Shown piece by piece: positions 14,080 through 41,000 of a DNA stretch of 64,000 nt; the stretch's first letter is position 1, and each line of letters starts with the position of its first letter. The notes under the pieces are model-generated. The model was given only the letters and a program-made list of their open reading frames with translations, ran no database searches and was not told the DNA's origin. The DNA lies in NCBI RefSeq assembly GCF_000143415.4, contig NW_003314268.1, forward strand, positions 1,193,247-1,257,246, read 5' to 3'. A program made the translations under genes and the position numbers. Source of the DNA: Selaginella moellendorffii (taxonomy: Eukaryota > Plantae > Lycopodiophyta).

Positions 14080-14360
14080 GTCCAACCTTTGACTTCCAAG
14101 CTTGGCATCTTTGAAATTTCTTCTAAACTCTTAAGAAATCCAAGCTGCGACAATTTTTTAAATAACAAAGAAATCCAAAGCCTTGAAAATCATCGCCTGT
14201 GGCGAGAAGTCTTCGAGCTCCGCAGCCTTTTACTTGGCGACGTATTCTGGAAATCAAGTGAATTTCACGACATGTATGCAGAAGCTCTGGTCGCAAGGAC
14301 CATGGAAACAAACTCACGGACCAGATCATTAGAAAGAAAATATGCCAGTACCTTGTATTG
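14080..14360 (+). repeat. Unknown gene-fragment repeat (FWKSSEFHDMYAEAL), copies also at ~11690-11910, 25555-25830(-), 31500-31740(-), 46670-46890(+)
   Basis: Recurrent homologous nucleotide and peptide segment with no intact ORF. Confidence 0.65.
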
Positions 14361-14547
14361 TGAGGTTTCTCGGGAACTGGGATTTTTGTGCGCACTCATG
14401 TGAAAGTTGGAGATTCCTACAGGAGGACGTCTGCTGGGACCATGAGCTGACGGACCTTGATGATAGAAATGGTGAGCTCGTGGAAGTGTGTTGCAAATAG
14501 AGTTGGTGCTCTAGTCACATCCACTATGTACTCACAGATTGCCCCAA
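14360..14547 (-). pseudogene. MSH2: MSH2 (MutS ATPase domain) gene fragment, copy 1
   Basis: AICEYIVDVTRAPTLFATHFHELT...NFHMSAH; isolated and frameshifted. Confidence 0.85.
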
Positions 14548-14599
14548 CACTGTTGTGCTGCACTGCTGCAAAGCCGCCACCCCATATTGCTGTATAACA

Positions 14600-17500: not shown

Positions 17501-18275
17501 TGTTTTTCTATGTAGGGTGAGTTGACAATGCCACCACACTAGCAAGTTTATAGTTCGCCATCAACATTCCACAACTACTCCCAATGATTGACATTGTCAT
17601 CTAGTGGAGCTTTGACATCCAGATATATTCAAACTGACCCTCAAGGTGGGCTACTATGTGAGCCACAGGTATAATATGATCCTATACACTTTTCATTTTT
17701 TTCCTTAGATTTGTTTGACTCATTTTTGTTTCTTTGCTAGACTCTCTTAGCACTTGTGGCTGTAGTGCACACCTATGCTAATAACAATCAATAGTCCTTA
17801 TCTTGTTGTCCTAGACACTATGACAATTGGTCCAAAGTCATTAGTGGGATGTCGTCTATGACACCCTTGGTCCTCTGGCCGTTTACCACAGCCTTTGTCA
17901 CCAAGTGGATTGCAATCCCAAAGACCTGGCATATACATTTATATGGCTGGAGAAGAGAGCCATTGGTGAAGGTGACGGAACTTGACGAGATAGTAGTGGA
18001 CCTCCTAGAGTGTCTTATATGGGGTGGCTTATACTCTAGTATTCCTTTCCATCCTGGCATAGCCCAACATGCAATTCTACTATCATTCCAAGCCTCAGGA
18101 ATCCAACCTTCATCCATAACCAACCCAGAAGCATTTGTCTAGCATGCAAGGTAGTTCAATGGTGGTGAAGCCCATGTCGAGTCTGCAAAATTTGGCCTCA
18201 GCTCTATCTAGCCTTGCTACTAGCCTCCTCAAACATTATGGGGAGCCATAGAAAACAAGGCCAATGGCAACCGAG
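14600..18275. repeat. Unclassified decayed AT-rich segment, duplicated inverted at ~22170-25270
   Basis: Colinear reverse-complement homology with many transitions and indels; fragmentary ORFs only; probably an old TE, family not identifiable by eye. Confidence 0.6.
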
Positions 18276-19373
18276 TGTAAGCCATAAAGTTTTTCTTTCC
18301 AGTTTGCCAGCTTACCTCGTGTATCCGACCAACACTGCCTTGGCTTGTGTTAAGTTCGCTCGCCAAGGTTCCCGCCTATTGTACCAGCCCCTACTTGGTC
18401 CTACTTGGTTTCAGCTATTCACTACATGAGCAATAAAGTGTTAGCCATCCATCTACAGATTCCCAATTCTCTCCCAATCCCCCTTCCCGGGTTAGACTGG
18501 ACTTAAAGTTCGATTACACTCCCCGCAAGCACAAGCAGCCAAGCACACCAAGCCTCCAGGTTCCAAACACCCCTTGGTACAACAAAACTTGATCATGAGA
18601 CCCTCTAAATCCCAAGCCTTGGGTGCAACACTTGCTTCGGGACATCGGGGCGAAACACCGTGGCCTAACGGCCCAGTATGGGTACCTCTACCCCCCCCCC
18701 ACTTCCATCCCGAAGGGAAGGCCCAAGCCCCTAGGAAGGGCGAGGACCAAAGAGCCACAAGGTACTCACGTGGGGCACCACTCCACATGAGTCGGGAGCA
18801 CCATAGTCGATTTCCCTTTCGGGAGTGGGAGCTGCTCTTGAACACTTCCCTGGGTGGCCCCTCTGGCACCATCCAAGCCCATGCTCACTCCCACTCAAGG
18901 CCCCTCAGCCCTAGTCTCAACCTCAAGTCAGTTTGGAAGCACCACTAGAGAGTTCCTTCAAGACTGGTTCCTAGACCCCCCCCCCTTGGGAGATGCATGC
19001 TTTGGGCTTTCACCCCTTGACCTGTATTAGTATTTGGACTTAGTCTCAAATTCGATCTTGGACTTGATCTCGGACCCGACTTCGGACTCGGTCTCGGACT
19101 CGATCTCGAACTCGATCTCGGACCCAATCTCAGACTCGACTTCGGACTCGGTCTCGGACCCGATTTAGATCTCGGACTCTGTCTCGAACTCGGTCTCGAA
19201 CTCGGTCTCTGATTTGGCCTCGGCTCGATCCCGGACTCTATCTCAAAGTCGGTCTCAAAGTCGGTCTTGGACTTGATCTTCGACTCGGTCCCATCCGATG
19301 AACTCTTTGTTATTTCGGTCATGCTTTCGGGGATCCTTTAGCCTACGACAGCTCGAGGAGTCGGTTTCTTACA
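18276..19373 (-). mobile_element. 3' LTR of chromovirus element A, displaced by inversion
   Basis: Reverse complement of LTR 32239-33400; TG..CA ends; PPT just beyond 19373; flank CCGAG (18271-18275) is the reverse complement of TSD CTCGG. Confidence 0.93.
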
Positions 19374-19799
19374 ACTCCATCACCCATAGAAGAAGTTCGA
19401 TGCCTACATCGAACGCCTCTTTTTTATCCTACGACTTGTTGACCATGTCTCCAGGGGCATCCCCCCACTTAGCGGTGTGCCTAAGTTAGCCTCCCCGGCC
19501 AAGAGCCCATGACAACGGAATATAGGTGTCCCTATATTCCTCACCTCACCACGCCCTAGTATGGGGTTGGGACTTGAACCTAGCCTTGCTTTACTAGGGG
19601 GTTGGGACTCGAACCCAACCTCCGTAGAATACGTCTACGGATTCGACATCCCCGCGGGGAGTCGGGCGTAGTGCCCTACGCTTGGTCAACCTAGCTAACC
19701 CATGCTAATTAGCTTACCTTCGGTGCGCCTTTGGGTCCCAACATATGCCACTTGCTCAACTTTGCAAATTGATATTTTAATTGAACTTTGCATAAGTAC

Positions 19800-19978
19800 A
19801 TAGAGTTCTGCCTTGTAGAAATTCCTCCATTAAATCTTGCGCGTTCGCTAGGTTCTCCTTCGGTTCCCATGTTGCTTCATAGTGTGGAAATCCTTTCCAC
19901 TTCACATGGAACTCTCTCACCTTGTGTCCTTGTCGCTTACTATTGCGCGCATTGAGGATGGCCTCAACTTCATAACCA
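19800..19978 (-). mobile_element. Integrase C-terminal chromodomain of element A
   Basis: GYEVEAILNAR...REFHVKWKGFPHYEATWEPKENL, a canonical chromodomain. Confidence 0.9.
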
Positions 19979-20405
19979 GGGGCAGAAAGGGACTTGATAG
20001 GAACTGACAAAGGGACTTTGGGGAAGGCGATTCCTCAGGTCTGTGGGCATCCTAAGGATGCTAAGGAGTGGATCTAGGATGACCACTCGTGGATAGATGG
20101 CCCAGTCTTGGAGAGACGGGATGGTGATGCAAGTGGTATTGGACCACTAGTGCAGCAAAGGTGAATGGGCATGGCCTTAGCGTAACGGGCCGAGATGTTA
20201 GTGGTACCTTTGGGTGTTGGTCTTGGGACCGGACACGCGGAGCACTTGGACCAGGTGCAAATGTTGAGTGGCATGGATGCCATTTTTGGGGCTAGCAAGT
20301 CCCAAGTCCTGAATTGGACTGATGGAGGTTGTGAATGAGACTCCTCCAAGTGGTTGGAGGTGTGGTTAAGTGACTAAAGTAGAATGGAAAATTTAGTCGC
20401 TTACA
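19976..20405 (+). mobile_element. Terminal piece of element B 3' LTR, displaced by inversion
   Basis: Reverse complement of 44159-44588; ends ...GCTTACA followed by TTGCT, the reverse complement of AGCAA at 46070-46074. Confidence 0.93.
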
Positions 20406-22169
20406 TTGCTCTTGTTGCTCATGGCAAAAGAACTAAATTATCATTATTTGGCACACCTCTTTTAACATGGTGTTCATAGCAAGCGTAAGTGAACTCCATC
20501 TAGCTCCATTGCAAAGCCATGAATATATACTATCTGGAGTTATGTCTCTAATGCATCCCATTAAATTTATCCTTCGTTGCCATTGATTTCTAGTGTAACT
20601 CTCTCAATGCTTTAGTTTTGCACCATGATGTTTAGAAGATTTGCATGACTCAAAAGTAGGTTGAAGTCTAACCAATTCCATGAATTGGTGGGGCTTATAC
20701 TTCGATTGTGTACTACATAAGGGTGTATAGTGTTGATGTTTGTGGAGTTCTCTCAAGTGTAGCATGCTGAAGGAGATTTGAGAATATGGAAGTTGCAATT
20801 GCATGCAATAACATTTAGGTGAGAAGAGCAATAATAATGGACACTTTCAACATTTTCCAATTATAACCATTTCAAATTTTAAAATTTGTAAAAAGAGTTT
20901 CCAAGTATAGGGTGAAACTATCCAATATATGCTATGCACTACGGCCGAAGAACTAGAGTTTTCAGGGATTGGAAGTTCGTGATTTGGTAAGAGTAGATTT
21001 GTGATAGTATCCTATCTACTCTAACCTTGTTGTAATGTTTGAGGTTTCTAGGTTTCCTCCTAGTATGGCAAACTAGAAAGGATTCTATGACTTCTTTGAG
21101 GTACAACAATGGATCCAACAGAGTATAAGACTGAGGATTCTATATTATGCCTCCTCCTCTCAAGGCTTGGCAATCCCTCCAATAAGGTTGCTTAAGACTA
21201 CTTCTAATGTTATGCTAATTATTGAGGGGAAAGGTCCTGTTGAAGAAAGTGACAATGAGGGATGTATTACTGCTCGAGATGTAAGCGAGGACAAGTTCAT
21301 AGATCCAGAGGGTGATTTTTGTTCTACCATGAAACAAGAACCAGAGGCGCCGATACCTGGTGGCCACACACCTGGCCTCTCGATCTCCCCTTCATAATTT
21401 TGGAGCAGTTGAGAGTTCCCCAAGCAAGGATGGGCATCATGTAGCACCCAAGCTCGATAGTTTTGACCCAAATCCTAGATTGGGAGCTGCTTTGGAAGCT
21501 ATAGTGATTGCCCTTGATGAGGCAAGTATAAGCCGGGAGGGCTATAAATGTTTATAATGGGTATTTGTGGAATATTTTGAATATTTTTACCTTTATCTTT
21601 GCTAATGAACTAAGTTAAATTGGAAAGAGTCTCTTTCAAAGTGTTAAGGAATTATATATTTTCAAAACAATTATCTAGTTTAATTGTGAAAGTGTTGAGA
21701 TTATGGTACTTCCACAACATCAACCCAATATATACAAGCTCTTTGGATTCTAAAGTGCCCGGTGGATCTTGTGTTTGGTCCACTCCATTGATGGGTACGT
21801 TAAAGGGAAGAAAACTTCTCGTGTGCATATGGAGAACCTGGGAAATCGAGTAGACAATATACTCTGTCTCTCAACTTAGATCTAAATAGGCTCTCCCAGT
21901 CAGTACTCTAGAGAATCAATTGTAGAGTGATGGAACTTGGATAACTCTTTTCGGCTTATCACCAAGGGATCATCATCTGTAGTCAAAGCATTTGTAGTAG
22001 CTATAACTGTAAGGACCACAACATATATTTATGAGGAGAGAATTTAAAAAAGATAATGACTTACATTCACAAACATCCTTCTCCTTGAGTGCTTGGGCCT
22101 AATTTTGATAACTTAGCCAATATTTGTCAATAAGATGCTCCATAACATCGTATAAACAGATTACTATTG

Positions 22170-25100
22170 CTCAGTTGCCATTGGCCTTGTTTTCTATGGC
22201 TCCCCATGATGTTTGAGGAGGCTAGTAGCAAGGCTAGATAGAGCTGAGGCCAAATTTTATAGACTCAACATGGGCCTCACCACTATTGGATTGCCTTGCA
22301 TGCTAGACAAATGCTTCTGGATTGGTTATGGATGAAGATTGGATTCCTGAGACTTGGAATGATAGTAGAATTATATGTTGGGCTGTGCCGGGCTGGAAAG
22401 GAATACTAGAGTATAAGCCACCCCATATAAGACACTCTGGGAGGTCCACTACTAACTCGTCAAGTTTTGTCATCTTCACCGATAGCTCTCTTTTCCAGCC
22501 ATATAAGTGTATATGCCAGGTCTTCACGATTGCAATCCACTTAGTGACAAAGGCTGTGGTGAACAGCTGGGGGATGAAAGGTGTTATAGACAACATCCCA
22601 CCAATGACTTTGGACCGATTGCCATAGTGTGCACGACAACAAGATAAGGACTGCTGATTGTTATTGGCATAGGTGTGCACTACAACCACAAGTGCTGAGA
22701 GAGTCTAGCACAGTGAAACAAAAATGAGTCAAACAAATCTAAGGAAAAAAAAATGAAAAGTGTATGGGATCATATTATACCTGTGGCTCATATGGTAGCC
22801 CACCTTGAGGTCAGCTTGAATATATCTGGATGTCAAAGCTTCACTAGATGACAATATCAACCATTGGGAGTAGTTGTAGAATGCTAATGGCAAACTATAA
22901 GCTTGCTGGTGTGGCGGCATTATCAACTCATCCTACACAGAAATACATATAGAAAAAGGATGGGTACAAATGAAAAACTTACCGAGCTAGACCACTTGTT
23001 GCTTCGAGAGGTAGATGGCTAGGTATTGGCACTTGTACTAGTAGATGGAGTTGCAAGAGTTGTAGCAACTGGTGGAGTTGTGGAGCTGGTAGCAATGGCA
23101 CTATATGGGCTTGAGCATGTCTTGTAGTTGGTGTTGGTGGTAGTGTTCCAGATTGGACAACACCGTGGGCATGAGGTGTCTGGACTTGCTCATTTCAGAC
23201 ACTCAGGCTGCTGCTTTCCAGGGAAGGCAAGGAGAACAAAACGTGCTAGAGGTTTTGAATATGTTGCAGTGTTTGCAATGTTAGGCAACACTCTACTTGC
23301 TCAAATGTAGTCAGAAGTTCTGGGTGGGATGCTATTGGAGTTGATATCCCTACTGTGGAGCTTGGAAAATCAAGCGGTTGGCATGTGCCTCACAAGACTA
23401 TTATCTATACCAATTGTGGAACATCAAGTGCTTGGGTGCATACTCACGAGGCATTTCTTGCATAGTGTCTACTACTATTGAGGCATGCGAGGTTCTTGCT
23501 TCAAGCCTAGAAACCATAAGGGATTGGTTATGCAAACTTGATCAAGGAGAAGTTACTTACCATCATAGCTGTGGCACTCTTGTTTGGGCAGTGGTCCTAC
23601 AATTGGGGGAGTGTGCGCTAGAAGCCTTGCCTCTAGTTAAATCATGTGAATCAATTAGAAAAATGAATAAACCATTGACAAAATCATATAAAGCGTTGTC
23701 ATAAAACATATCTAAGGCACATTTACTATGGGTGGGACTTGGTGTAAACCCTAATCCAAAACATGGCAACCCTAAAATTGAGGAAATCAAGAATTGAATT
23801 TAAATTTTAAATTTACACTAAAGAACACTCAATTTTCTCTGAGTATGGCCAAATACAATTTTTCCAAAGCTCATCACTTCAATAGTGTTGCTGTAGGCAA
23901 GGCACTTTCAATGTTAAATGGTAGATCTACACCTGCAACATCAACCATTGCACACTCCATTGTTAGATCTAATGAAATAGATATTTTTTGTCTAAGTTGA
24001 GTCCCTCCTGATACATAAAAAATGCCTCATTTCAAACAGTGCCGAGAGCTTGTAAAGTAGCCAAGAGAAATGGTCCAAGTATGTCTTTAATATCTTTTCC
24101 ACCAACAGCCAGCATAATCCTACAAAAGCACAATTTATGAAGAATTCTATAATATTACCAAAATTCTTACCCAAGCTCTTGTTCCATTGGTTGAAATAAA
24201 TTTGTAGAAACATGAGGTGGTCTGAAATAATCACCATATCGATACGGACAGACCTAATAAAGGTTCCAGGTTGCAACCCAGTGTGAAATATCCTTTTTGA
24301 GGTACAAAGCAAAGACACAATGTAAACTCTAGTTGTGCCATGAATTAGATACATTAAGGATTTTTATGTTTTCCATGGACTTAAAAAAGTGCTTATAAAA
24401 CCACACCACATGCTCAAAGAGCTCTCTCCACGAATATTCTATGCACTGCAAAACAAAATCGATTTAGTCCTTATTTGGACAAACTCTAACATTATGAGTA
24501 CCTGGTTATGATACCCCACATATGAAGCTCCTAACTACAAGACCCTAATAGGAGACTATATCCTTTTCAACCTCAATGTGATCTAGAGCATTGTCTCTCC
24601 TAGGCCTTCCAAATTGATAAATAGCCTATGCATATGTGTTGAATATTACATGGGATTCTTTGGAGGCAACTAGCTCACAAGCTACAATATAATGAGTTGC
24701 CCTACAAATAATGGCATGTATATAAAAATTAAATAAACCTCTGGGAGAGCATCATTGTCACTATCCACATCTAAACCACAGCCTGAATTACTAAAATTGG
24801 ATGGAAGGCCATCCACCTTTTCTTCCTCCATGTCTTCCAGTAAACCTAGAAAAAAAAGTTTAAGTGATATAAATTTGAAATAAACTAAGGGAATTATACT
24901 CATAGCAAGAACTTTGAAGTCCATAGAGAGCAATTTAGTAATAAATTAAAGCCACTTCCAACACTACCCACAAAAATATTTGAAACCAATCACTAGCAAA
25001 CCAAATTACCTTTTACATTTAATGCCAAGAAACATGCCAAATAACATAGCACTAGGGCACTAAGGCAAGGAAGCATCTCTTAAACCTTATGTCATAATAA

Positions 25101-25270
25101 ATCCAATGATATGTGGCATCTATGTATAGCACAATGTTCATATTATAGGGACATTATCAACCCATCGAATTGCAATGGAATTGATATTTAATGCTAAACC
25201 AATAGAAAACTGCCATATGGACACTATATTGCATTAACATCCACCCTTTTACAAATTGCACACTATAGAG
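22170..25270. repeat. Second copy of the decayed segment 14600-18275, carrying the empty site of element A at ~22166-22178
   Basis: attg-ctcag-ttgcc is uninterrupted here, while the other copy has element A at this position. Confidence 0.75.
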
Positions 25271-25363
25271 AATTGTGCTAATGAAAAAACTCTATGGTTT
25301 TTCTGTGGCAGTGGTGTTATACATATGGGGTGGCGGCTTTGCAGCAGTCCAGCACAACGGTGT

Positions 25364-25544
25364 TGGGGCAATCTGTGAGTACATAGTGGATGTGACTAGA
25401 GCACCAACTCTATTTGCAACGCACTTCCACGAGCTCACCATTTCTATCATCAAGGTCCATGGTCCCAGCAGACGTCCTCCTGTAGGAATCTCCAACTTTC
25501 ACATGAGTGCGCACATAGATCCCAGTTCCCGAAAGCTCACAATA
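25364..25544 (+). pseudogene. MSH2: MSH2 gene fragment, copy 2
   Basis: GAICEYIVDVTRAPTLFATHFHELT..VGISNFHMSAHIDPSSRKLT. Confidence 0.85.
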
Positions 25545-25881
25545 CAAGGTACTCGCATATTTTCTTTCTAATGATCTGGTCCGTGAGTTTGTTTCCATGG
25601 TCCGTGCGACCAGAGCTTCTGCATACACGTCGTGGAATTCACTTGATTTCCAGAATGCGTCGCCAAGTAAAAGGCTGCGGAGCTCGAAGACTTCTCGCCA
25701 CAGGCGATTCTGGGAGATGATTTTCAAGGCTTTGGATTTCTTTGTTATTTAAAAAATTGTCGCAGCTTGGATTTTTTAAGAGTTTAGAAGAAATTTCAAA
25801 GATGCCAAGCTTAAAAGTCAAAGGTCGGACATCACATTGGATCCAGCGCACGGCTCTACAATTTAGGGGCAGAAAGTAGGA

Positions 25882-27416
25882 ATGTTTTGGGCGGTGCATA
25901 TAGTGGTCTTCCTCCTCACTGCTTTCATCCTCAAGCAATGGCTCTCCAGCATATCTCTCAATCTTCCGCCAGGCCCCAGAGGATTACCTCTCGTCGGCCA
26001 CTTCCATCTCCTGGCCATGGGCAAGCTCCCACACATCGCACTCCAGCAGCTCTCCAAGAGATTTGGACCCCTCTTTCACTTGCGCCTGGGATCTGTCCCT
26101 GTGTTCGTGGTTTCCAGTCCAGAAATGGCCAAGGAGTTTCTCAAGAACCACGACACGGAATTCGCCTATAGGCCTCGGAACAACGTGGTCTCCATAGTCG
26201 TGGATAGCAGGAGCATGTCTTTCTCGCCATATGGAGACTACTGGAAGAAGCTGAGGAAGCTCTGCGCCACGGAGATATTCACGGCCAAAAGGATGAGTAT
26301 GAACACGCAGATCATCCGGGACGAGCTGTGGGAGCTCAGTGGTGAGCTATTGAGAGCTTCTAAGGCTGGCCAAGTTGTTGGAGTGAGACCACACTTGAGG
26401 GCGCTCAGCTTCAACGTCATGACTCGCATTCTGATGAAGAAGACGTACTTTGGATCCAAGGCCTCGGGCGATCCCGCTATTGCGGCGGAGGCCTCGAATT
26501 TCATAGCGATGATTGATGAGATCCTCGAGGTGGGAGCGGCTTTCTCGATCACTGACTATTTCCCCTACTTGAGCTGGCTCGACTTGGTTGCCCGCCGTGC
26601 AAAGGTGGCCGGGGATAAAATGAATGGCTTCTTGCAAAAGGTTTTGGACGAGCAGCGCCCCGGTGAGGTTCCCGATTTCGTGGAGGTCACAAGGTCTCAC
26701 ATTGGAAACGATGTGGTCAGTCTCAGAGCTCTCCTCATGGTAAGTTGCAAATCTGTGGAACTTACTTGATTGTTCTGTGATCTTGATAGGATCTACTTCT
26801 TGGTGGATCTGAAACAGCATCCACTGTGACAGAGTGGGCTCTGGCGGAACTTCTTCACCACCCAGATTGGATGGTCAAAGCTCAGCAAGAGATTGAGAGT
26901 GTTGTTGGACGCACACGCATGGTCGAAGAGGGAGACATATCCAAGCTCGAGGTTTTGAATGCCATCATCAAGGAAAGCTTTCGTCTCCATCCTCCCGTTT
27001 CTTTGCTCATACCACATGCATCGGTCGAGGCTCAGAATGTTGCAGGCTATGACATCCCCAAGAATGCAATGCTTATTGTGAATGTCTACGCGATTGGCAG
27101 AGACCCTCGAGTTTGGAGTGATCCTCTGGAGTTTCAGCCCCAGCGATTCATTGGCAGCAGCATCGGTGTCAATGGCCAAGACTTTGAGCTGCTTCCATTT
27201 GGATCTGGAAAGAGGGCTTGCCCCGGGCTTCATCTGGGTCTTAGAAACGTCCAGCTCGTTCTTTCTAATCTTCTCCATGGATTCGAGTGGAAATTTCCTG
27301 GAAGCCCAAAAGATCAAACTATGGATGAAGCTATGGGAAACATAAGCTTCATGGCACACACTCTCAAAGCCAAAATCACTCCCAGGCTCAACGAAAGTCT
27401 TTACAGGTTGACTTAG
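25882..27416 (+). CDS. Cytochrome P450, CYP71 clan, copy 2 (exons 25882-26739, 26790-27416)
   Basis: Near-identical to copy 1 (6 aa differences seen: I/V, I/L, M/V, L/V, S/A, S/P); motifs intact. Confidence 0.95.
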
Positions 27417-27767
27417 GATCATTTGATAATATATTATATAACTCAAGATCATAGAATCAATTAGTCTCATACAATCTTCAAACCAAAATTTAATCATGTA
27501 GTACTTACAGATAACATTTAATGTTTGTCTCAACGATCTTGGGCAAATGCAACTGGACTAGCAAATCCTCTTGTTCAAGAAAAAGTCTGGAAACTTTTAA
27601 AGTTAGCAAGATGTGCCAAGCCCTTCACATTTTCCAGACCATAAATAGTGTCTGAAAATCTCACCTAATGTCTCAAATTTTGCTATGGCTAGAAGCTTAA
27701 TGTCAACACTATAAACTTCATGTAGTATAATGACTCTAAACTACTTACAAAGTGGAGGACAACCATG

Positions 27768-27904
27768 GAGGCATCAGCGAGGACGTAGCAGCAGCAATGA
27801 TTGTGAGCGGGTTCTGTCGTGAAGTTGTGGACCAGTTTGTTGGAGAGTTTGAGAGGGAGCTTCCCGAGCTTCTCAGGATGAAGCTCAAGGGCTCCGTTGG
27901 TTAG
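27768..27904 (+). pseudogene. Duplicated 3' end of SufB at the duplication junction
   Basis: [44 protein letters not shown] plus 3' flank homologous to 51677-51812 reversed. Confidence 0.9.
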
Positions 27905-28235
27905 AAGAGAGAGAATGAGCGAAGTCATCAAAGAATTGTGTTGATGAATTTGCTTTAAAGCTCAAGGTTAGATTGTTTTAGTTGAGCCTTAAGTGGACGC
28001 TGTACAGTGTGTATAAGTGGCATTAGTGCTATTTGAGCCACGAGAAGCCCTGACAAAAACTATACTTTAGAGTGATTCTACTATATTGCAATTGGCTGGT
28101 TTAATGTTTCTAGTTTCTAGATTGCTGGGGTTTCAGAGCAATTTGTATGCGTTTGTTGCACCAAAAATCTCTAGGATAGCACGAAATCAAGTACTTGAGA
28201 GCCAGCCTTTTGTCTTTATTTTAACATTAACGATG

Positions 28236-28239
<4 letters not shown>

Positions 28240-28280
<41 letters not shown>

Positions 28281-28321
28281 ATATGTATGTATGTATGTAT
28301 GTATATGTGTATGTATATATA
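28240..28321. repeat. Compound microsatellite (TA)n(TG)n(TATG)n
   Basis: Seen directly; much shorter in the paralog at ~51314-51345. Confidence 0.9.
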
Positions 28322-28329
28322 CTTAATAT

Positions 28330-31300
28330 CGATGTCTTGCCAAAATGCTTGCATGACACTCTTGGAAGGTCTCCTTGCATAAGTTGTGGCTTGAACTGAG
28401 AACTATAAGACCCTTTTGCCATAATAAATTCTCATGATACATTAGCTTCTCATGCGTATAGTCAGGATTATCACAAAACTGTTGCCAAATATCCGAAAGC
28501 ATCGGATCCAGCAAGTAGCCTTCGTGAATCTTATCAACATACACTGCTTGCTTCAGTACGTTCAAATCATCGTGAACCTAAACCCTAACACATCAGGAAG
28601 GATGTGCTTTTCCCTGTAGTGAAATCCAATGCTTGCAGTTGCTCCACCCAGCACTGCTATTTCTTGGACAAATGTTGTTGCTCCAAAATAAATTTGAGGC
28701 TGTGATGGTTTGTTTGGAGCATAAACTGTCGAGGCAACAGATAATGGTGGTAGCGACCAATTGCATGAATAACTGCTAGCATTTCCTGTTCATACACTAG
28801 TAACCTGAACTTCTGAACAGAGAAGCGACAACTATCAAAGGCCACCAATTCCTCTCCTTGGCAGAGAACTGCTCCAATTCATGCATCTGATGCATCAGTA
28901 TCAACAATGAAAAGTTGCGAGAAATCTGGAAGCAAAAGTAACAGTGCACCCAGAAGTCGTTGCTTCAGCAACTCAAATGATTCTTGGGCTACATCTGACC
29001 ATTGAAAAGTAGAAGAGCGCAAAATATTGCTGAGCAGAGCCGCAATAGAGGCAAGCAATGTAAATAGTTTACAAAGCCATAAAAAGCTCATAGTTGCTTC
29101 AAAGATTTGGGAAGTGGCCAATTTGCAACAACTTATAATTGTGATGGATCAACCCATACCTTGCCAATGTCCTACACAAAATCTAAGGTACTGAATGGTC
29201 TTCAGTCCAAAAGAACACTTGGATAACTTTGCAACCAAAGCATTGTTCTCCAATGGATAAAATCACTTCCAAGTGGTGCAAGTGTTCTGTCCAGTTCTGA
29301 CTATAGATTAGTATGTCATAAAAAAGAAATTATAACGAACTGGAAGAAATACATAGCCAAGAGCTTGTTCACGAGACTTTCAAACGTAGTAGGCACATTA
29401 GTAAGGCCAAAAGGCATTACTCTGAATTGAAACAATCCTTGGTGAGTCCTGAATGCTGTCTTGGCCTTGTCCTCATCTTGCATGGCAATATGATAGTAAC
29501 CAGAATGAAGGTCAATCTTGGAAAAGAACTTGGTGCTGCCAAGTTCATTCAGAAGCTCATCTACCCTGGGAATAGAGAACCTATTCTTGACGGTTATCCT
29601 GTAATCCACCACCATGAACCATAAAAGATGTGAACAAACTATTGCTTTCCTCCACCAACCCTTCCTGTTGTAATTCCTCCACCATGGTATCAACGTTGGC
29701 TCGTCCCTCCCTACTCAGACGAATTATCAGAAAGTTAACTGTGATGGAGTGCGGTTCTAACTCAATCCGATGTGTGATCCTAGTGACTTCACTAAAATGA
29801 TTACTAATTTTCCGAGTGAAAACATGGGCATGCTGGATTGCCACTGCCTTGATATCTGCATGCATGGAGGAAGACTTTATGTCTGTCACTGCCTCCTCCA
29901 CCTCAACTGATGAGAACTCTTCCCCCTTCCCACAAAGACTGGAATCGAGTTGCCTATCACTAGCAACCAAATTCATTGCACTACCACTTTCTTTGCTGCT
30001 TTCTTCAAGTGTAGTCTTGAGCTTATTCAAGTCCCCACTCCTTTCTTCACAGTGTTGTCCTGCTTTCTTCACACCCAGACTTGAAGCTTGAGCAAGAAAC
30101 CCACTACTTTCTCCACAGTGTTGTCCTACTTTCTTCACACCCGTCTCTAGCTGCCCACATGGACCACTACTACTTTCTTTGCAGTGTTGTCCTGCTTTCT
30201 TCACACCCAGGTCCAAAAGATGCAGCTCAGCTATCTTTTTTTCTTGAAGGTACAAAAGAAAGGAAAGTTGTTGGGCTCCTTCCAAAAAGCTCTCTACCGT
30301 CTCCAGCATACTTGCATTCGAACGGGTACGATTATTAAAAAACGCCGATTAAAACGCGCGTATAATACGGCGTTTAAAACGGCGTTTAAACACCAAGAAT
30401 ATTTTTAAAAACCCTAAAGAATATGCTTTCTTTTACTTAGGATTAGGGTTCATGTAAAATCAGGGTTCGAAAAAAACCGTAAAATCAGGGTTCGAAAAAA
30501 ACTGAAAACCATTATACCCGTTCGAAAAAAAGCTAAACAGGTATTAAACGTTCGATACCCGTTCGAATCCGGTTGCGTTCGAATGTTCGGATGCAAGTAT
30601 GGTCTCCAGCAACCCTTCGTGTCTGCCTCACATGACACTCTGGAAAGAGGCGAGTTCTCTCTCCCCATCACGGCAGTATCTCTGGCAGTTCCCCACTAGC
30701 CTCTTGTGTGAAGAAGTAACCCGAGCTCCTTGAGCCGAGATTCCAAGGTCTGCTACTTCTCTGCTAAAAGACACATCACTGCTATGCTCTCATACTATTG
30801 ATCTGCTAACAACTGGACCAAAACTTGCATGCCCCGGATTGTAGCTATGACTTGCTGCTGGTGAAGAAGATTCTGCTTGATCAATGCTTGCATGGTTGAT
30901 TCCAATTGCTGGATTATCAATCCTTGCTCTTCCTTTTCCCCTTCTTGGTCATGCACCTGATTTGGATTGGAAACTCACTCTAGCTCCTCGTCCATTAGTG
31001 TGGTGGCCTCAATTTGCTTCTTTATTGGCCTCATGTTTACAAATTTTGCCAAAGATGCTAGAGAAGCCATTTGCAAAGAAACCCTATTTCGCCATAGCAC
31101 CCATACAAAGGGATAACTGACTCTAAGTTGGTCATGCTGATTAACTAGCTGAAAATGACATCTGCTAAGACTCCCATAACCAAAATCCTTTTTAGGATTG
31201 CCTGCATTAGCCCCATCCTTTGCTATGATGCCAAACCCTTGCCTGGTACACCCAATATGATTGGTAGTGTTGCTTCGATACCACTGTTTAGATCTGCCCA
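28330..31300 (-). mobile_element. Decayed Ty3/gypsy remnant (element C) copy 1, most of gag and the protease deleted
   Basis: RT (FSKIDLHSGYYHI, FRVMPFGL) and RNaseH (FIVDTDAS) remnants; homologous to 47200-51300. Confidence 0.85.
30307..30601. mobile_element. hAT-like MITE (295 bp) with 8-bp TSD GTCTCCAG
   Basis: TIRs CATACTTGCATTCGAAC / GTTCGGATGCAAGTATG; TSD at 30299-30306 and 30602-30609; empty site in the paralog at ~49280. Confidence 0.92.
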
Positions 31301-34300
31301 GATCTCCTAGTAGGAATCACTAATATATTCCATGGAAGAGAAATACAGAGGAGGAAAAGAGAGAAATTGGAAGAGGAGAGAAGAGAAAATAGAACCCAAA
31401 AATATAACCTACCTTCCATACCAATTTCTCCCTCCTTTAATGAGGAATCCTTGCCGTACCGTGCTCACCAAGCTTAAATTGTCCAGGTCAAAACTGTCCA
31501 AGGAAGCAATGAGAACACTTCCTAACAACAAGGCTGTGTGTGTTTTCTTTTCAAGGTTCCATGTGGCTGCTTTGGCACACACATCGTGGAATTTGCTCAA
31601 TTTCCAGAATGTTTTGTCGCACTTGCCAAGCAAAAGGCTCAAAAACTTATTGCCACAAGTAATTCTGGAGGATAGGGATAAAGGTTGGAAATTCCTTAAG
31701 GGCTTTGCTGCATTGCTGCTGGATTAGATGAGCCATGAATATGCCTTGAAGAAGGTCTAGGATCTCAATGCTGAGTTCTTGGACAATCTTCCTGTCATTG
31801 ATATGATTTTAAATTTCTTTCCTATTCCCATATAATTGCTGTACAATGTTGTAACTGCTGTGTTGCTGTACAAAGTTGTGTACAACTTCAGTCCATGTTA
31901 TCCTATGTGGGAAAAGTTTCTTCCAGCAATGGAAAAATGTCCTCTTCATCCACAGTTTTCTTCTTCATTATTCTCATCTTGGTTTGGTTCTTGTGTGGCT
32001 GGCCTCAGGAGAAATGGCTCTATCACCAAGGGATCATTATTTGTAATCAAGGCATTTGTAGGAGCTACAACTGTAAGGACCACAACATATATTTATGAAG
32101 AGAGAATTTAAAAAAAATAATGACTTACGTTCACAAACATCCTTCTCCTCGAGTGCTTGGGCCTAATTTTAATAACTTAGCCAATGTTTGTCAATAAGAT
32201 GCTCCATAACATCGTATAAGTAGATTACTATTGCTCGGTGTAAGGAACCGACTCCCCGAGCTGTCGTAAGCTAAAAGATCCCCGAAAGCATGACCGAAAT
32301 GACAAAGAGTTCATCGAATGGGACCGAGTCGAAGATCGAGTCCAAGACCGACTCTGAGACCGAGTTCGAGATAGAGTCTGGGATCGAGCCGAGGCCGAAT
32401 TGGAGACCGAGTTCAAGACCGAGTTCGAGACTGAGTTCGAGACAGAGTCCAAGATCCAAATCGGGTTCGAGACCAAGTCTGAGGTTGAGTCCGAAGTCGA
32501 GTCTGAGATCGGATCCAAGATTGAGTTCGAGATCGAGTCCGAGACCGAGTCCGAAGTCGGGTCCGAGATCGAGTCCGAGATCAAATCTGAGCCTAAGTCC
32601 AAATACTAATACAGGTCAAGGGGTGAAAGCCCAAAACATGCGTCTCCTGGGGGGGGGAGGGGGGGGGGCTGTAGAGGGTTCCAAAAGTATAGTAGGGATA
32701 GTGAGGTCCAGGAACTAGTCTTGAAGGAACTCTTTAGTGGTGCTTCCAAACTGACTTGAGGTTGAGACTGGGGCCGAGGGGCCTTGAGTGGGAGTGAGCA
32801 TGGGCTTGGATGGTGCCAGAGGGGCCACCCAGGGAAGTGTTCAAGAGCAGCTCCCACTCTTGAAAGGGAAACCGACTGCGGTGCTCCCGACTCATGTGGA
32901 GTGGTGCCCCACATGAGTACCTTGTGGCTCTTTGGTCCTTGCCCTTTCTAGGGGCTTGGGCCTTCCCTTCGGGATGGAAGTGAGGGGTAGAGGTACCCAT
33001 ACTGGGCTGTTAGGCCACGATGTTTCGCCCCGATGTCCCAAAGCAAGTGTTGCACCCAAGGCTTGGGATTTAGAGGGTCCCATGATCAAGTTTTGTTGTA
33101 CCAAGGTGTTAGGAACCTAGAGGCTTGGTGTGCTTGGCTACTTATGCCTATGGGGAGTGTAGCCAAACCTTAAGTCCAATCTAACCTGGGGAGGGGGATT
33201 GGGAGAGAATTGGGAATCCGTAGATGGATGGCTAACACTCCATTGCTCGTGCAATGAGTAGTTGAAACCAAGTAGGACAAAGTAGAGGCTGGTACAATAG
33301 GCGGGAACTTTGGTGAGGGAACTTAGCATAAGCCAAGGCAGTGTTGGTCGGATAGACGAGGTAAGCTGGCAAATTGGAAAGGAAAAATTTGTGGCTTACA
33401 ATTTGGTATCGGAGCCTTTTCCTCAGTTCTAGCGAAGGATAGAGGTGGATTGCTCGGAGATGGCAAAGGCAGGGCGTAAGCGAACCCAGGTGGAGACGGA
33501 ACCTCTGCCAAAGCTGGAGCCTCCGGTCGAACAAGAGGCTATGGATGAGGAATCCTTGCATGAGGAGGACTCTAGTGAGGAAACTTCCAAACATGAGTCC
33601 GGTGGCGAGGTTCGGTCGTCTAAGGCTCGATTGGACGTTCTAGAAGGACAATTGGCGCAGACCAATGCCCTGCTAGAGACTCTCGTACGCAAGCTAAAGC
33701 GTGACGAGAAGCGGAAGAAAAAGCGAAAGACTGCGGATGCTGGTAGCGCAAAAGGTGCGGACCCTTCGGCAGGGACTGAGGCAAAACTAGACAAGGTCGA
33801 ACAGACCGAAGTGGAATCAATCCCTCAGGCAATTCCCAAGTACAAACCAAAGCCCCCACCGGTCTTCAAGGGAGTGAACAACTATAAGGTGGTGGAGGAT
33901 TGATTTTACGATATGGAGGACTACTTCCGAGCATTGCGGTTACCAAGCTCGGAGAAGGTCCCATGTGCAAAACCATATTTGGCAGATAATGCCAAGTCTT
34001 GGTGGAGAATGACAGAGGCCAACGAAGGACCTGTGGCCACTTGGGAAATGATGAAGGCGAGGATCCGCGCGACTTATGTTCCTCCGAATGCTACTCTGCA
34101 TCTAAGGGACAAGCTGAGTAGGCTGAAGCAGACCGGAACCATTCAGGAGTATGTGAATGGGTTTATGGCAAAGAGGATACTTGTCACGGACATGGGGGAT
34201 ATGGATGCATTCCATGCCTTCATATCAGGTTTGCAAACCTAGGCTCGCAGTGAGGTGATGCGGTGGAACCCAACCAACTACAAGGAAGCATTGGATGCGA

Positions 34301-37300
34301 CCATCAAGGTGCATTTCAACGATAACCTACAAAAGGGGAACACAACGGGGTCGGGATCCACGTTTAGCAAAGGGGCCAAACCAAGGGGAACGTATAGCAG
34401 GGGGAAATTCAAGAAGAGTTTCTCTAAGAATGAGTCCTCGGGGTTCCGGAAAGGCAAATCCAATGGCCAGCGAGCGAGTACGTGGGGGAGTCAAGCGAAA
34501 AGAGACAAACCCATGGATAAGAAGGTCAAGTCATATAGCAGCGTGGGAAACAACGTATGCTACAACTGCGGTGAAGCGGGACACTTTTCGAGGGAATGTC
34601 CCTACCCGAAGAAGGCCAGAGCCAATATGGCCATCAAGTCGGGTGAAGTCCAAACTGAGGTATGTGATCCAGTCCCTAACTCAAAGTTACTCATTACACG
34701 AGCAACTTTGGTAGAGAGTCGTTCGCGACATCTACTAGCCCTCCGAGGGAAGCTCGGAGGTAGCTTTGTTAAAATCCTTATTGACACGGGTGCTTCGGAT
34801 AATTTTGTGGCTGCAGACATAGTCCGGCAAGCCGGACTAACGGTGCAGCGGCTAGGCGAACTAAGGACTATAGAGTTTGTTCAAGGTAGCCAAAGGACCG
34901 ATGAGGTACTTTGACAAGCGAGAGTCGAAGTAGGGACATGGAAAGTAGACATGGATTTCACCGTGTTGGACATGGTGGGATTTGACATGATCTTCGGAAT
35001 GGATTGGTTCAATCGATTCGTGGTGGCCATGCATGGACAAGGTAGGAACCTTGTGGTACTGGCGAATGCCCAAGGAAGAAGATTTAGGGTGGAGGCCCAG
35101 GATCTAAAGGTAGGGCAAAGCAAGGCCAAAGATTCCTGCTTAAACCTGGTGTCCACGAGAGGATAACTCACTAAAGGAACTAAGGCAGCTTTTTTGTGCT
35201 TACTCTTGGTGAAGAGTGACAAAAAGATAGAAACGGAAGAAGTACCTTTAGTGATCCAGCGGGTGTTGGACCAATTCCAGGATACCATGCCAGAGGAGCT
35301 ACCAGCGGGGTTGCCCCCCGCACGACCGATAAAACATAAGATTGAGCTGGTCGAGGGTGTTGAGGCGGTGGTTCGTCCCCCCTATCATTTGAACGAAAAA
35401 GAACTCAAGGAGCTCAAGTGCCAACTAGAGGAGTTGGTGGACAAAGGGTATGTTAGGTTAAGCAAGTTGCCGTATGGGGCGCCGGTGTTATTTGTGAAAA
35501 AGAAAGATGGATCTATGCGCATGTGCATAGACTACCGGTTGCTCAACAAGTATACAAAGAAGAACAAGTATCCTGACCTTAGGTCAATCCTTGAGAAGTA
35601 TTTTGCCTTTCCCAACCTATCGAACATGTCCTCAATTCTTGGCAAAGGGTACTACCAGATCAAGGTAGCCGAGGAAGATGTCAAGAAGACAACTTGTCGA
35701 ACGAGGTATGGGAGCTATGAGTGTTTGGTGATGCCCTTCGGGCGATGCAATGCGCCGGCAACGTTTTCGGCGCTGATGAACCACATCTTTGTACCTTATC
35801 TGGATCACTTCATGGTCGTTTATATCAACGACATCCTGATCTATAGCGAGACACTAGAGGAGCATGCCGAACACTTGGCGAAGGTGTTTGAGAAACTAAG
35901 GGAACACAAACTGTATGCTAAAGAGAGCAAATGTGACTTTGCTCAACAAGAGGTAAAGTTTCTTGGGCATGTGGTGGGCCAGGACGGGCTCAAGGTGGAC
36001 CCGGAGAAGGTCCAAGCGATCCAGGAATGGGAGCGACCATCAAATATGAGTTGAGGGCATTCTTGGGGCTATGCAACTACTACCGAAAGTTTATTAGACA
36101 CTATTCAAGAGTAGCCCTGCCCTTAATAGACCAAACAGGAAAAGGGAAGATGGTATGGACAGTGGAATGCGAGGCGGCATTCGTCCATCTCAAAGGGAAG
36201 TTGAGGAAGGCCCCCCGTGTTAGCATTACCAGACTTTGGTAAGGACTTTGAGGTAGAAACAGATGCTTCGGACTTTGCGTTGGGCGCAGTTTTGAAGCAA
36301 GACAACCATCCAGCAACGTTCTTCTCGAAGAATTTAGACAAGGCTCAACGGAAGTGGCCTGCCCACGAGAAGGAATTGTTTGCGGTGGTCAAGGCGCTCA
36401 AGGAGTGGCGACACTACCTTGGGAGACACTTCAAGGTTTACATGGACAATGTGGCAACGAAACACTTCTTATCACAGCCCGACTTGAGAGGGAAACAAGG
36501 TCAGTGGGCCAATGCCTTGGCCAAGTTTGATTGTGAGATTCTGTACAAGCCTGGGAAGAACAACATCGTGGCGGATGCGCTAAATCGAAAAACGAGCTTG
36601 AGGTTGGTGATATCCAGTGCAACAGCAACCTTTTGGGATGATGTGCGGACAGCATATGAGAATGATGGTCTAGCACAAGAAGTGTTGTTGAGGAATCTAG
36701 AGGCATGGGAAGCTCACCAAAGAGGTGAGCTGCCAACGGAAGAGAAAACGAGCTATGCGGAACGCAACAGACTCATCTATTACAAGCAAACGAGGGTGTA
36801 TGTTCCAGAAGGGGAACTAAGGAAGGTAGCCTTAGAAGAGTGTCATGACGGACCTCTTGCAGGACACGGCGGAGTGCCCAAGACAATAGGCTTACTCAAG
36901 AGGAAGTACCATTGGCCAGATATGGCTAAGGACGTCCAAGACTATGTAAAGACATGTCCAACATGTTAGCAGGTCAAAGCCGTGACTAAGGCTAGTGGGG
37001 GCTTGTTGCAAAGCATCCCAATTCCAGATCGTCTGTGGAAATGTCTTATGATGGACTTCATCACGGGACTTCCCCCAAGCGAGGGGTTTGATGCGATATT
37101 CGTGGTGGTGGACCGATTTTCGAAAATGGCACATTTCATACCCACCACAACGGAAGTGGATGCGGAAGGTGTGGCGAAGCTGTTCTTCGAACAAGTGGTT
37201 CAAGTGCGGGGAAGGCCAGAAGAGATCATCTCAGATCGAGATAAGATCTTCACTAATAGGTTCTGGAGGACTCTCCTGGAACAGTATCGCACCAAGTTGA

Positions 37301-37330
37301 AATTCAGCACAACCTATCACCCACAGACAG

Positions 37331-37377
37331 ATATGGGGTATTAAGTCAAGTTTGGTAGCACTAACACTTCTTGACAG
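37331..37377 (+). other. Intron-like insert 1 in element A integrase (donor GT>AT, branch CTAAC, TTGACAG acceptor)
   Basis: Removal restores HPQTDGQTERVN exactly. Confidence 0.75.
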
Positions 37378-37777
37378 ACGGACAAACGGAAAGGGTGAAT
37401 AGGCAGCTGGAGGATTATTTGCGATGCTATGTCTCAGAAGACCAGACCGATTGGGTAAGTTATTTGGGACTTGCGGAAATGTGTTATAACAACTCACCAC
37501 ATTCGAGTATCAGGGTGAGTCCATGGGAAGTCATCAATGGGCGAGCTATTGAAGGTCCTGTGGAGCTCGGCGTGGCCGAGTACTAGGAGAGCTGGCCGTA
37601 GTGGAGGCATTCACGGCAGAAAGACTCAGCATTTGGAATCTAGTGAGGGATTCCTTGGAACGGGCTCAACGTGAACCAAAAGCGTCAGGATGTAGAGTTC
37701 CAAGCTGGGGAGAAGGTGTGGTTGAACACCAAGAACCTCAGGCTACCAAGTGGGATCAGCCGAAAGTTGATCTAAAG

Positions 37778-37829
37778 GTAAAAATGCATGTATTCCTGTA
37801 AATGAATTGATTTTGAGTTCCTTAAGCAG
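37778..37829 (+). other. Intron-like insert 2 in element A integrase (GTAAAA...GCAG)
   Basis: Removal restores the KL..RFAGPYEI (GPY/F) motif in frame. Confidence 0.8.
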
Positions 37830-38003
37830 GTTCGCTGGGCCCTACGAGATTGAGGCACGAATCGGTAAAGTGGCTTACCGTCTCTGACTTCCTCGAGAGA
37901 TGGGGAAGATGCACCCAGTGTTCCACGTGAACTTACTCAAACCGTACTTTAAGGATCCACTTCGCAAGGACCAAGTGAGACCTTTACCTAAGATTATCCA
38001 AGG

Positions 38004-41000
38004 GTTTGCCAACACTGCCACTAGATCGAGGCCCACAGGCCCGACCACTAAGTCCCATGGTCCTCTGGGACTTCCTCACCACACGACTGTGTCCTTAGTC
38101 ACTACCCCAGAGGACTGCTCCTCTTCCTTTCCACAGTTTAGGCCTTTGGGACAACATTTCAGAACACCGTGGCCTTACGCGAGCCACCTAGGTACTCTCC
38201 CCGCCTTTCGCCTTTAGGTGCTCTAGCCATGGGCTTAGAGCGAGGTTCCATTGAGCCACACCTGGTATCCAAGTAGGTAGTGCCACCCACACTTGGACTG
38301 GGAGCATCGGCCAGTCGATCTCCCGGGGGAACTAGAGCCGGCTCTTGAACACTTCACCAAGCTACCCCGCTTGTCGGTCCATATTCACTCTAGTCTTGGA
38401 CTTCCCAGTGGTCAGTTCATCACCCAACACTGGGTCTGGCCTTCCTGGGCCAAACTGGCCTTTCCTGGCCAAACTGGCTCCACTGCAGTCCTCCCCCTAC
38501 TATACTTTTGGAGCTCACCAAACCCCCCAGGGTCTGGGAGATGAACGCTTTGGGCTTTCACCCTCTCAGACTCGAACTCGGACTCGGACTCGGACTCGGA
38601 CTCGGACTCGGACTCGGACTCGGACTCGGACTCGGGCTCGGGCTTGGTCTCAGCCTTGGCCTCGGTCTCGGTCTCGGTCCCGGTCTCGGTCCCGGTCTCG
38701 GTCTCGGTCTCGGTCTCGGTCCCGGTCTCGGTCTCGACCTCGGACTCCATGTCGGGTCCTTCTCGGACTCCATCTCGAACTCCATCTCGGGCTCCGTCTC
38801 GGTCCATCTCGGACTCCATCTTGGGTCCATCTCAGACTCCGTCTCGGTCCACCTCGGACTCCATCTCGGACTCCATCTCTGGTCCATCTCGGACTCCATC
38901 TTGGACTCCATCTCGGGTCCATCTCGGACTCCGTCTCGGTCCACCTCGGACTCCATCTCGGACTCTATCTCGGGTCCATCTCGGACTCCATCTCGGGTCC
39001 ATCTTGGACTCCATCTCCACTGCAGTCCTCCCCTGCTGGCTCCACTGCAGTCCTCCCCCTACTATACTTTTGGAGCTCACCAAACCCCCCAGGGTCTGGG
39101 AGACGAACGCTTTGGGCTTTCACCCTCTTAGACTCGAACTCGGACTCGGACTCGGACTCGGACTCGGGCTCGGGCTTGGTCTCAGCCTTGGCCTCGGTCT
39201 CGGTCTCGGTCCCGGTCTCGGTCCCGGTCTCGGTCTCGGTCTCGGTCTCGGTCCCGGTCTCGGTCTCGACCTCGGACTCCATGTCGGGTCCTTCTCGGAC
39301 TCCATCTCGGACTCCATCTCGGGCTCCGTCTCGGTCCATCTCGGACTCCATCTCGGACTCCGTCTCGGTCCATCTCGGACTCCATCTTGGGTCCATCTCG
39401 GACTCCGTCTCGGTCCACCTCGAACTCCATCTCGGACTCCATCTCGGGTCCATCTCGGACTCCATCTCGGACTCCATCTCGGCTCCATCTCGAACTCTGT
39501 CTCGGTCCACCTCGGACTCCATCTCAGACTCCATCTCGGGTCCATCTCGGACTCCATCTCGGGTCCATCTCGGACTCCGTCTCGGTCCACCTCGGACTCC
39601 ACTTCGGGTCCATCTCGGACTCCATATCGGACTCCATCTCGGACTCCACTTCAGACTCCATCTCGGGTCCATCTCGGACTCCGTCTCGGTCCACCTCGGA
39701 CTCCACTTCGGGCCCATCTTGGACTCCATATCGGACTCCACTTCAGACTCCATATCGGACTCCACTTCAGGTCCATTTCGGACTCCAACTAGGGTCCATC
39801 TCGGACTCCATCTCAGACACTTCCACGTGTCATGTGTTAGTCCCTTTTGGGTCCTTTTTTGGAGCCTTGCTTATTGCTCGCTTCGTGCTCGCTCCTTGAG
39901 CACTTTGTTGGGAGTTCCACTCCCGCTCTCGACCTTCCAAGTCAGAGGTTTTAGTCCAAATGTGTTACATTCGTTTGGGCTTTCGCTTCGGCCACTACCA
40001 CGTGGCACCCTTTCCGGCTCCACTTTGGGGCCTAGGGATTTTGTGTCTCACAACTCCACCACCCACCCATAGACGAAGTTCGATGTCCTCATCGAACGGT
40101 AAACCATTTTATAAAGTAACACCCGCATGTGTTACCATTTCCATCCTTGGCACCTAGCCAATATTTGTCAATGGTTTGACATTGAAGGCTCACCATGCCT
40201 TCTCCATATTCGTCAATGGTTTGACACAAAAGGCTCACCATGCCTTGCCCATCCTCTAAGGAGGATAGTCTCTCCAACTTAGAGACTCACTTGACCACCT
40301 GGGGTGGGTTGCTCCTTTTTATTGGTTCAGTCCTCGCTAAACCCATTAGAGACACCCTCTCTAACTCAATTCCAGTACTCATTCTTGAGTAGTCACAGAT
40401 TCCATTGATCTACCTTTGCACTTTGGAACGTTTACTTTTGACTTCTTGAAATCAAGTTCCTAGGTGTCTCCGACACCTTGCCTTGCACATTTTGTGCAAC
40501 TCCACTTCCCCTCCTAGGAAGTTCTCTACTCGAGGGCACCCTCATCCTCTTTTCTATTTTTGTGCCACCATTGGCATTACGTTCCATTTATCATTATTTG
40601 TGCTAGGGCTATCCACGGCCCTATCTTTTGGCTCCTTAGTTGCTCCCTCACTTGGAGCCTTTCCTTTGCCAAATTGGAGCACTTGGGAATCCGTCCTTAG
40701 AAGTCCACTTCTTTTTCCGCAATCCGTTAGCACCAAACACATTAGTGTTCTTTGGCTAACTTTGCCACTTGGATTCTTTCCAATGGATTCCACGGCCCTA
40801 TCTTGGGCACTCGTCTTTTGCTCCTATCCTTGGATTGTTGCACCAAGCAACATAGGATCATTACCTCCCTCCTGGAGGTATTCTTTTGGTTCCATAGCAA
40901 AGGATCTGCTTTGCCCAGACTAGGGTGTTCACCCCTAGTAAGTCTCCCCAACTGTTCTAGGCTCTCTTCCTAGCCCAACCTTGTGACCCACCCATGGGCC

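Follow-up and report, generated by a model that had tools for sequence, protein, structure and literature searches.

The stretch of DNA considered here, referred to below as the window, comprises 64,000 nucleotides of the lycophyte Selaginella moellendorffii (assembly GCF_000143415.4, contig NW_003314268.1, positions 1,193,247 to 1,257,246 of the forward strand). It contains two long terminal repeat (LTR) retroelements, a Ty3/gypsy chromovirus (element A) and a non-autonomous LTR element (element B), together with a pair of cytochrome P450 genes. Each of the two retroelements is split into two pieces. The arrangement very probably results from a chromosomal inversion that is real and 18,028 bp long. 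Two double-strand breaks would have been followed by non-homologous end joining (NHEJ), at a time when both elements were already in place.

The window was scanned for repeats over its full length and compared with itself by BLAST, and Pfam scans were restricted to stop-free pieces. An inversion at this place had been put forward in an earlier reading of the sequence (the original prediction), whose coordinates were all re-checked in the sequence. The in silico re-inversion suggested with it was run as a coordinate flip of 19976-38003 (p becomes 57979-p); the retroelement pieces were compared separately, by reference, and the P450 exons one by one, by reference. Homology at the breakpoints was assessed by local alignment of ±100 bp around the junctions, in both orientations, against shuffled controls.

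Geometry and junctions of the probable inversion

The inverted segment is bounded by junction J1, between 19975 and 19976, and by junction J2, between 38003 and 38004, and it is at these two points that A and B are each split. J1 reads ...CTTCATAA up to the joint and CCAGGGGCA... beyond it; J2 reads ...ATTATCCAAGG followed by GTTTGCC.... Both junctions are reciprocal, in that sequence of A is joined to LTR sequence of B and the contents of the pieces are complementary. The two halves of the target-site duplication (TSD) of A, and likewise those of B, can be paired only across the inversion, and an exact 5-bp match has a chance of about 1/1024 for each of the two. When the segment is flipped, the 21 repeat pairs that the whole-window search had recorded as inverted all become direct, and the two units of an older tandem duplication come to lie head-to-tail with their junction preserved.

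Microhomology amounts to 2 bp (CC) at J1 and to 0 bp at J2. The similarity score at the breakpoints (±100 bp) was 14, as compared to a mean of 10.3 and a maximum of 16 among shuffles, and no homology beyond that of shuffles was found over this range in either orientation, in agreement with the earlier claim that the breakpoints share nothing more than microhomology. No filler, duplication or copy-number change is present at the junctions, no transposon terminus or new TSD occurs at J1 or J2, and the window is free of N runs. The bases lost are 4 bp from B (CCGT) and 0 bp from A, a net change of -4 bp.

The two split retroelements

Element A is a Ty3/gypsy chromovirus, and its LTRs, TSD, primer-binding site (PBS), polypurine tract (PPT) and domain order are all those of this class. 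Its two LTRs, both with TG..CA termini, are 92.2% identical over 1092 aligned columns and lie in opposite orientation. That they are opposed and nevertheless have the TSD CTCGG in common had been noticed originally, and both the LTR alignment and the TSDs as read bear it out. The PBS (TGGTATCGGAGC), similar to that for initiator methionine tRNA (tRNA-iMet), follows directly after 33400, and the PPT is a purine-rich run at 19374-19400 on the minus strand, adjoining the 3′ LTR. On the plus strand, between 33904 and 37341, the Pfam order is gag, zinc knuckle, protease (PR), reverse transcriptase (RT), RNase H (RH), integrase zinc finger and integrase (IN) core. The chromodomain (Chromo, PF00385) is found at 19974-19780 on the minus strand (E=6e-17), with a match that begins at residue 1 of the piece. 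The domain sets of the two pieces complement each other, one running from gag to integrase and the other holding the chromodomain; tblastn of the A pieces detected no second chromodomain in the window, and the order PR-RT-RH-IN followed by the chromodomain is restored only after the flip. The element is decayed, with numerous in-frame stops and several frameshifts.

Before the break, the C-terminal reading of A is ...HPVFHVNLLKPYFKDPLRKDQVRPLPKIIQ. The sequence of A stops with ...CAAGG at 38003 and continues with TTATGAA... at 19975 on the minus strand. The pieces meet in frame (CAA GG/T TAT GAA, translated Q G Y) with zero bases lost, so that A seems to be seamless across the break. The original prediction had pol of A stopping at PKIIQG at 38003, with the chromodomain on the opposite strand. 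The split at 38003 and the strand of the chromodomain hold as described, whereas the final G of PKIIQG has to be corrected: its codon occupies 38002-38004, and the third base, 38004, is borrowed from B.

In element B, the PBS adjoins 44159 on the minus strand, and B is therefore a minus-strand element whose split LTR is the 3′ LTR. When the two pieces of this LTR were aligned separately to the intact one, they did not overlap, and the sole gap was 44589-44592 (CCGT). The proposed division of the 3′ LTR of B into two distant pieces is thus upheld, since both map to the intact LTR in an orientation fixed by the PBS; the pairing of its TSD TTGCT is likewise confirmed by the reverse complement AGCAA read on the far side. 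The coordinate flip repairs both elements, as had been predicted, with CCGT alone lacking from B and nothing from A. The larger piece of the 3′ LTR holds an expanded 12-bp array, TCTCGGACTCCA, and the split LTR measures 2,479 bp (2,483 bp counting CCGT) versus 1,911 bp for the intact one, the array being expanded in the 3′ copy.

No Pfam match at E<=0.1 was obtained on ten pieces of the 4.1-kb interior of B, and tblastn of the A proteins gave no match in 40053-44158. With LTRs, TSD, PBS and PPT present and no coding capacity detected, B corresponds to the type of the large retrotransposon derivatives (LARDs). Common to A and B are the PBS, a homologous polypurine region of about 45 bp and a related 12-bp LTR array, and B is probably a non-autonomous derivative or relative of A. 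The shared PBS and PPT regions suggest that B may have been mobilised by proteins of the A type.

Tandem duplication and empty site

Self-BLAST reveals an older tandem duplication at the locus. Its unit of about 10.6 kb begins downstream of a P450 gene and reaches as far as the 3′ end of a SufBD gene. Unit 1 consists of 12119-18275 plus the reverse of 32238-27768, and unit 2 of the reverse of 27759-20411 plus 46075-51813. Unit 2 retains the empty site that corresponds to the insertion of A: within 22160-22200, nothing but a single CTCAG separates the homologues of the left and right flanks of A. Positions 18275 and 32239 must accordingly have been adjacent formerly, save for A, for which the empty site gives independent proof. 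The coordinates of these and the other features are collected in Table 1.

Table 1. Features of the window, named according to the preferred reading
Feature	Position	Strand	Basis or remark
Inverted segment, 18,028 bp	19976-38003		Junctions read directly; coordinate mapping
A 5′ LTR	32239-33400	+	Repeat search, self-BLAST, ends read
A 3′ LTR	18276-19373	-	Repeat search, self-BLAST, ends read
A TSD CCGAG (reverse complement of CTCGG)	18271-18275		Sequence read
A TSD CTCGG	32234-32238		Sequence read
A 5′ internal part, gag to integrase	33401-38003	+	Pfam on stop-free pieces
A 3′ internal part, chromodomain through PPT	19374-19975	-	Pfam Chromo PF00385
B intact 5′ LTR	44159-46069	-	Read and aligned
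B 3′ LTR, 430-bp end piece moved by the inversion	19976-20405	-	96.0% identical to 44159-44588, no gaps
B 3′ LTR, remainder	38004-40052	-	Maps to 44593-46069
B internal region	40053-44158	-	PPT region 40053-40100, PBS 44158-44140
B TSD TTGCT	20406-20410		Sequence read
B TSD AGCAA (reverse complement of TTGCT)	46070-46074		Sequence read
Unit 1, first part (U1a), ending at A insertion site	12119-18275	+	Inverted match to 27759-22170
Unit 1, second part (U1b), now inverted, old gypsy fragment within	27768-32238	-	Inverted match to 51813-46555; RT match
Unit 2, first part (U2a), now inverted, ending at B insertion site	20411-27759	-	Self-BLAST
Unit 2, second part (U2b), ending within 3′ end of SufBD gene	46075-51813	+	Self-BLAST
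Duplication junction: unit 1 end, 8-bp filler CATGGTTG, unit 2 start	27760-27767		Carried inside inverted segment
Paralogous empty site of A, single CTCAG, unit 2	22170-22174		Homologues of both A flanks on either side
P450 copy 1, with exons at 14006-13149 and 13098-12475	12475-14006	-	Outside inversion
P450 copy 2, with exons at 25882-26739 and 26790-27413	25882-27413	+	Inside inversion

Order of events and proposed mechanism

The divergence of the duplicated sequences decreases from one pair to the next. Unconverted duplicated DNA has a Kimura two-parameter distance (K2P) of about 0.11 with 1.2% transversions, the A LTRs 0.084 with 0.64%, and the B LTRs 0.025-0.04 with about 0.3%. Judged from these values, the order of events is duplication, insertion of A, insertion of B and inversion, and the inversion is placed after B because it cuts B. 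Transitions prevail in the comparisons, with 78 transitions and 7 transversions between the A LTRs (18276-19373 vs 32239-33400) and 228 and 30, respectively, in the distal arm (15668-18275 vs 24724-22170). This strong bias fits deamination of methylated cytosines and suggests methylation-driven decay, so that absolute dates, including those based on LTR divergence, are unreliable here.

According to the history proposed, a unit of about 10.6 kb was duplicated in tandem with 8 bp of filler at the junction, after which the chromovirus A was inserted in unit 1, followed by the non-autonomous element B in unit 2. One double-strand break would then have occurred in A, between the integrase and the chromodomain, and the other 430 bp into the 3′ LTR of B; the segment between the breaks would have flipped, and the four ends would have been rejoined in the wrong order by NHEJ. 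The first three steps and the geometry of the last can be read directly from the DNA. End joining is proposed on account of the reciprocity of the junctions, the 4-bp net loss, the 0-2 bp of microhomology and break sites free of any repeat or transposon end. Reciprocal junctions, no extended homology and only small junction deletions are among the features of an NHEJ-type inversion, and these three are found at this locus. The original view of an end-joining inversion younger than both insertions is supported by the junctions and the split TSDs.

Alternative explanations

Several points weigh against this account. The arrangement is seen in a single assembly, and the repair pathway is known by inference from the junction signatures. 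The in-frame meeting of the A pieces has a 1-in-3 probability of arising by accident, and the CCGT difference could in principle be a polymorphism of the LTR instead of a loss at the break. Word searches for independent proteins spanning the junctions in either form gave no candidates: the search with the chromodomain piece returned no relative of A that runs from ...PKIIQ to YEVE..., and none was returned with the stop-free open reading frame (ORF) across J2 (37888-38214), a search that could also have caught the ORF of an un-inverted allele.

The dependence on one assembly is also what gives some room to an artefact, in which the published assembly would show the 18-kb block mis-oriented and the chromosome itself would be un-inverted. 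The region is rich in repeats and has inverted arms of about 6 kb, a type prone to mis-assembly, and the public assembly of S. moellendorffii is of the Sanger whole-genome type, with a contig N50 of 120 kb (PMC5750206) that includes both haplotypes (PMC3095285). An error of this kind is nonetheless distinctly unlikely. As no N run interrupts the window, the block is not a mis-oriented contig within a scaffold; the breakpoints lie off the repeat boundaries, in mutually dissimilar sequence that gives an assembler no occasion to switch, and two exactly reciprocal chimeric joins with a mere 4-bp loss would be required. Replication-based template switching, by fork stalling and template switching (FoSTeS) or microhomology-mediated break-induced replication (MMBIR), could have made use of the 2-bp microhomology CC at J1. 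This match is near chance expectation, however, J2 is without microhomology, the net change is -4 bp, and neither junction has a duplicated or triplicated segment, a templated insertion or a change in copy number, which makes such an origin very improbable.

The kinship of A and B, which extends from the PBS, PPT region and 12-bp LTR array to stretches that are 69-75% similar, could be taken to favor homologous recombination between inverted repeats, or an inversion mediated by a transposase (alternative transposition). The two elements had the same orientation before the event, however, and recombination between them would have given a deletion, not an inversion. The similar stretches (18987-19280/38535-39388 and 19456-19639/41462-41634) lie away from the breakpoints, and the ±100 bp at the junctions are no more similar than shuffles. 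As for a transposase, the interior of A joins the interior of the B LTR directly, with neither a transposon terminus nor a new TSD. Both variants together are hardly credible. Inversion by non-allelic homologous recombination (NAHR) was rejected, there being no inverted homologous repeats at both breakpoints. NAHR inversions between inverted repeats or copies of transposable elements (e.g., PMC12368964) likewise have transposable elements at both breakpoints; unlike those, the elements here are passive targets in direct orientation, and their breakpoints are without homology. It is next to inconceivable, finally, that no inversion took place and that the four retroelement pieces were truncated independently of each other and are neighbours by chance. 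Truncated LTR elements are indeed common in the window (e.g., 7129-9050 and 48675-50357), but in A as in B the truncation points complement each other exactly, the TSDs of both match, and the paralogous empty site joins the flanks of A. An inversion by end joining thus remains the preferred reading.

Consequences for the P450 pair

P450 copy 1 is 100% identical to P0001, annotated as S. moellendorffii "flavonoid 3'-monooxygenase isoform X1"; the match of the first exon, at 14006-13119 on the minus strand, is 100% identical to this protein, which is encoded on a 3.9-Mb scaffold, and the runner-up matches are also from S. moellendorffii. The window is on this evidence nuclear DNA of a lycophyte. 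The exons of copy 2 are 98.6% and 99.0% identical to P0001, from which 6 residues differ. Residues 1-494 of P0001 are covered in both copies, the reading frames are intact, and PF00067 matches over both P450 exons (E=5e-27 and 2e-51). The flip of 19976-38003 places both copies on the minus strand, which agrees with the earlier proposal that a tandem pair had been turned into an inverted one. The paralogues have passed from a tandem to a divergently transcribed inverted pair, and neither gene was disrupted. They are now transcribed apart from each other, with starts 11.9 kb distant, and the locus consists of inverted arms of about 6 kb that flank a 3.9-kb spacer (18276-22169).

The arms are unevenly diverged. 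A 2.7-kb tract (12119-14800 vs 27759-25100) shows 98.5% identity and 0.38% transversions; it takes in the P450 gene with its intron and some 800 bp upstream. Over the remainder of the arm, identity is 89-90%, with 1.2% transversions. A tract of 705 bp (28549-29253 vs 51110-50406), within an old gypsy fragment, is 99.6% identical, and the adjoining DNA about 93%. Both tracts are likely to reflect gene conversion between the duplication units. A further idea is that the inversion is heterozygous between the two haplotypes of the sequenced plant, and that it made of the tandem P450 pair a small palindrome-like locus with arms now being homogenised by arm-to-arm gene conversion; for the conversion, the evidence consists of the 98.5% (2.7-kb) and 99.6% (705-bp) tracts within arms of about 89-90% identity. 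This idea is rather unlikely; if it were true, the locus would be shielded from unequal crossing-over, and the 3.9-kb spacer would still be able to flip.

Other features of the duplicated units and flanks

The distal end of the duplication (51813) lies about 50 bp within the 3′ end of the SufBD ORF (51762-53169, minus strand), and for this reason a short duplicated SufBD fragment is present in unit 1, near 27768-27820. At the insertion site of B, unit 2 has 2,022 bp (20411-21952 plus 46075-46554) without counterpart in unit 1, where the matching position is occupied by an unrelated 161 bp (31855-32015). A third split element at this site was considered and rejected, as the 2,022 bp specific to unit 2 have neither terminal repeats nor another copy in the window. 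A segment of about 165 bp is reversed relative to its flanks between the units (30625-30809 vs 47555-47769), with a neighbouring 27 bp transposed. It adjoins a 1.5-kb stretch found only in unit 2 (47770-49263) and about 290 bp found only in unit 1, and it is a second, far smaller rearrangement.

More decayed gypsy-type fragments occur at 7129-9663 and at 48675-51056 and 28603-29693, with matches to protease, RT, RNase H and integrase zinc finger; one such fragment was already in the unit before duplication. The flanks hold two host genes, a glycosyltransferase family 61 fragment (1924-2631, plus strand) and an F-box/Tubby-like gene with at least three exons (60928-62727, plus strand). The Rfam and tRNA scans gave no matches.

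Significance and comparison with known systems

The event is of a well-known kind, an ordinary structural variant of modest biological novelty, and it raises no new question. Its value lies in the fact that a small inversion documents itself, through two dated retroelements, an empty site and an older duplication junction, with breakpoints that are exact to the base and with an order of five events that is readable from one sequence. It offers a clean lycophyte example of an end-joining rearrangement, and a potential marker by polymerase chain reaction (PCR) for haplotypes or accessions. It also illustrates a route from a tandem P450 pair to a divergent inverted one, which alters the possible outcomes of recombination: conversion or flipping of the spacer, not unequal crossing-over. 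A literature search brought up no paper that deals with this locus or with inversions in S. moellendorffii.

Ty3/gypsy chromoviruses, Metaviridae with a C-terminal chromodomain, are reported in S. moellendorffii (PMC2864245). Like these, A combines TG..CA LTRs and a 5-bp TSD with a PBS of the tRNA-iMet type, a PPT and the order gag-PR-RT-RH-IN-chromodomain; unlike these, it is dead, with stops and frameshifts, and split by the inversion. Element B resembles the non-autonomous LARDs in its long LTRs (1.9-2.5 kb), 5-bp TSD, PBS and PPT, in its 4.1-kb interior without recognisable protein domain, and in sharing cis sequences with an autonomous family, that of A.

Small inversions that arise from two breaks repaired by NHEJ are recognised in plant genomes through split transposable elements. 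The inversion described here is similar to these in its two reciprocal junctions, at which microhomology is 0-2 bp and a few bp are lost, in the lack of a repeat or transposon end at the breakpoints, and in the split elements and TSDs that mark the former arrangement. It differs from them in that it is found in a lycophyte, with both breakpoints within dated LTR elements, and in that the empty site and the older duplication junction give an unusually complete internal proof.

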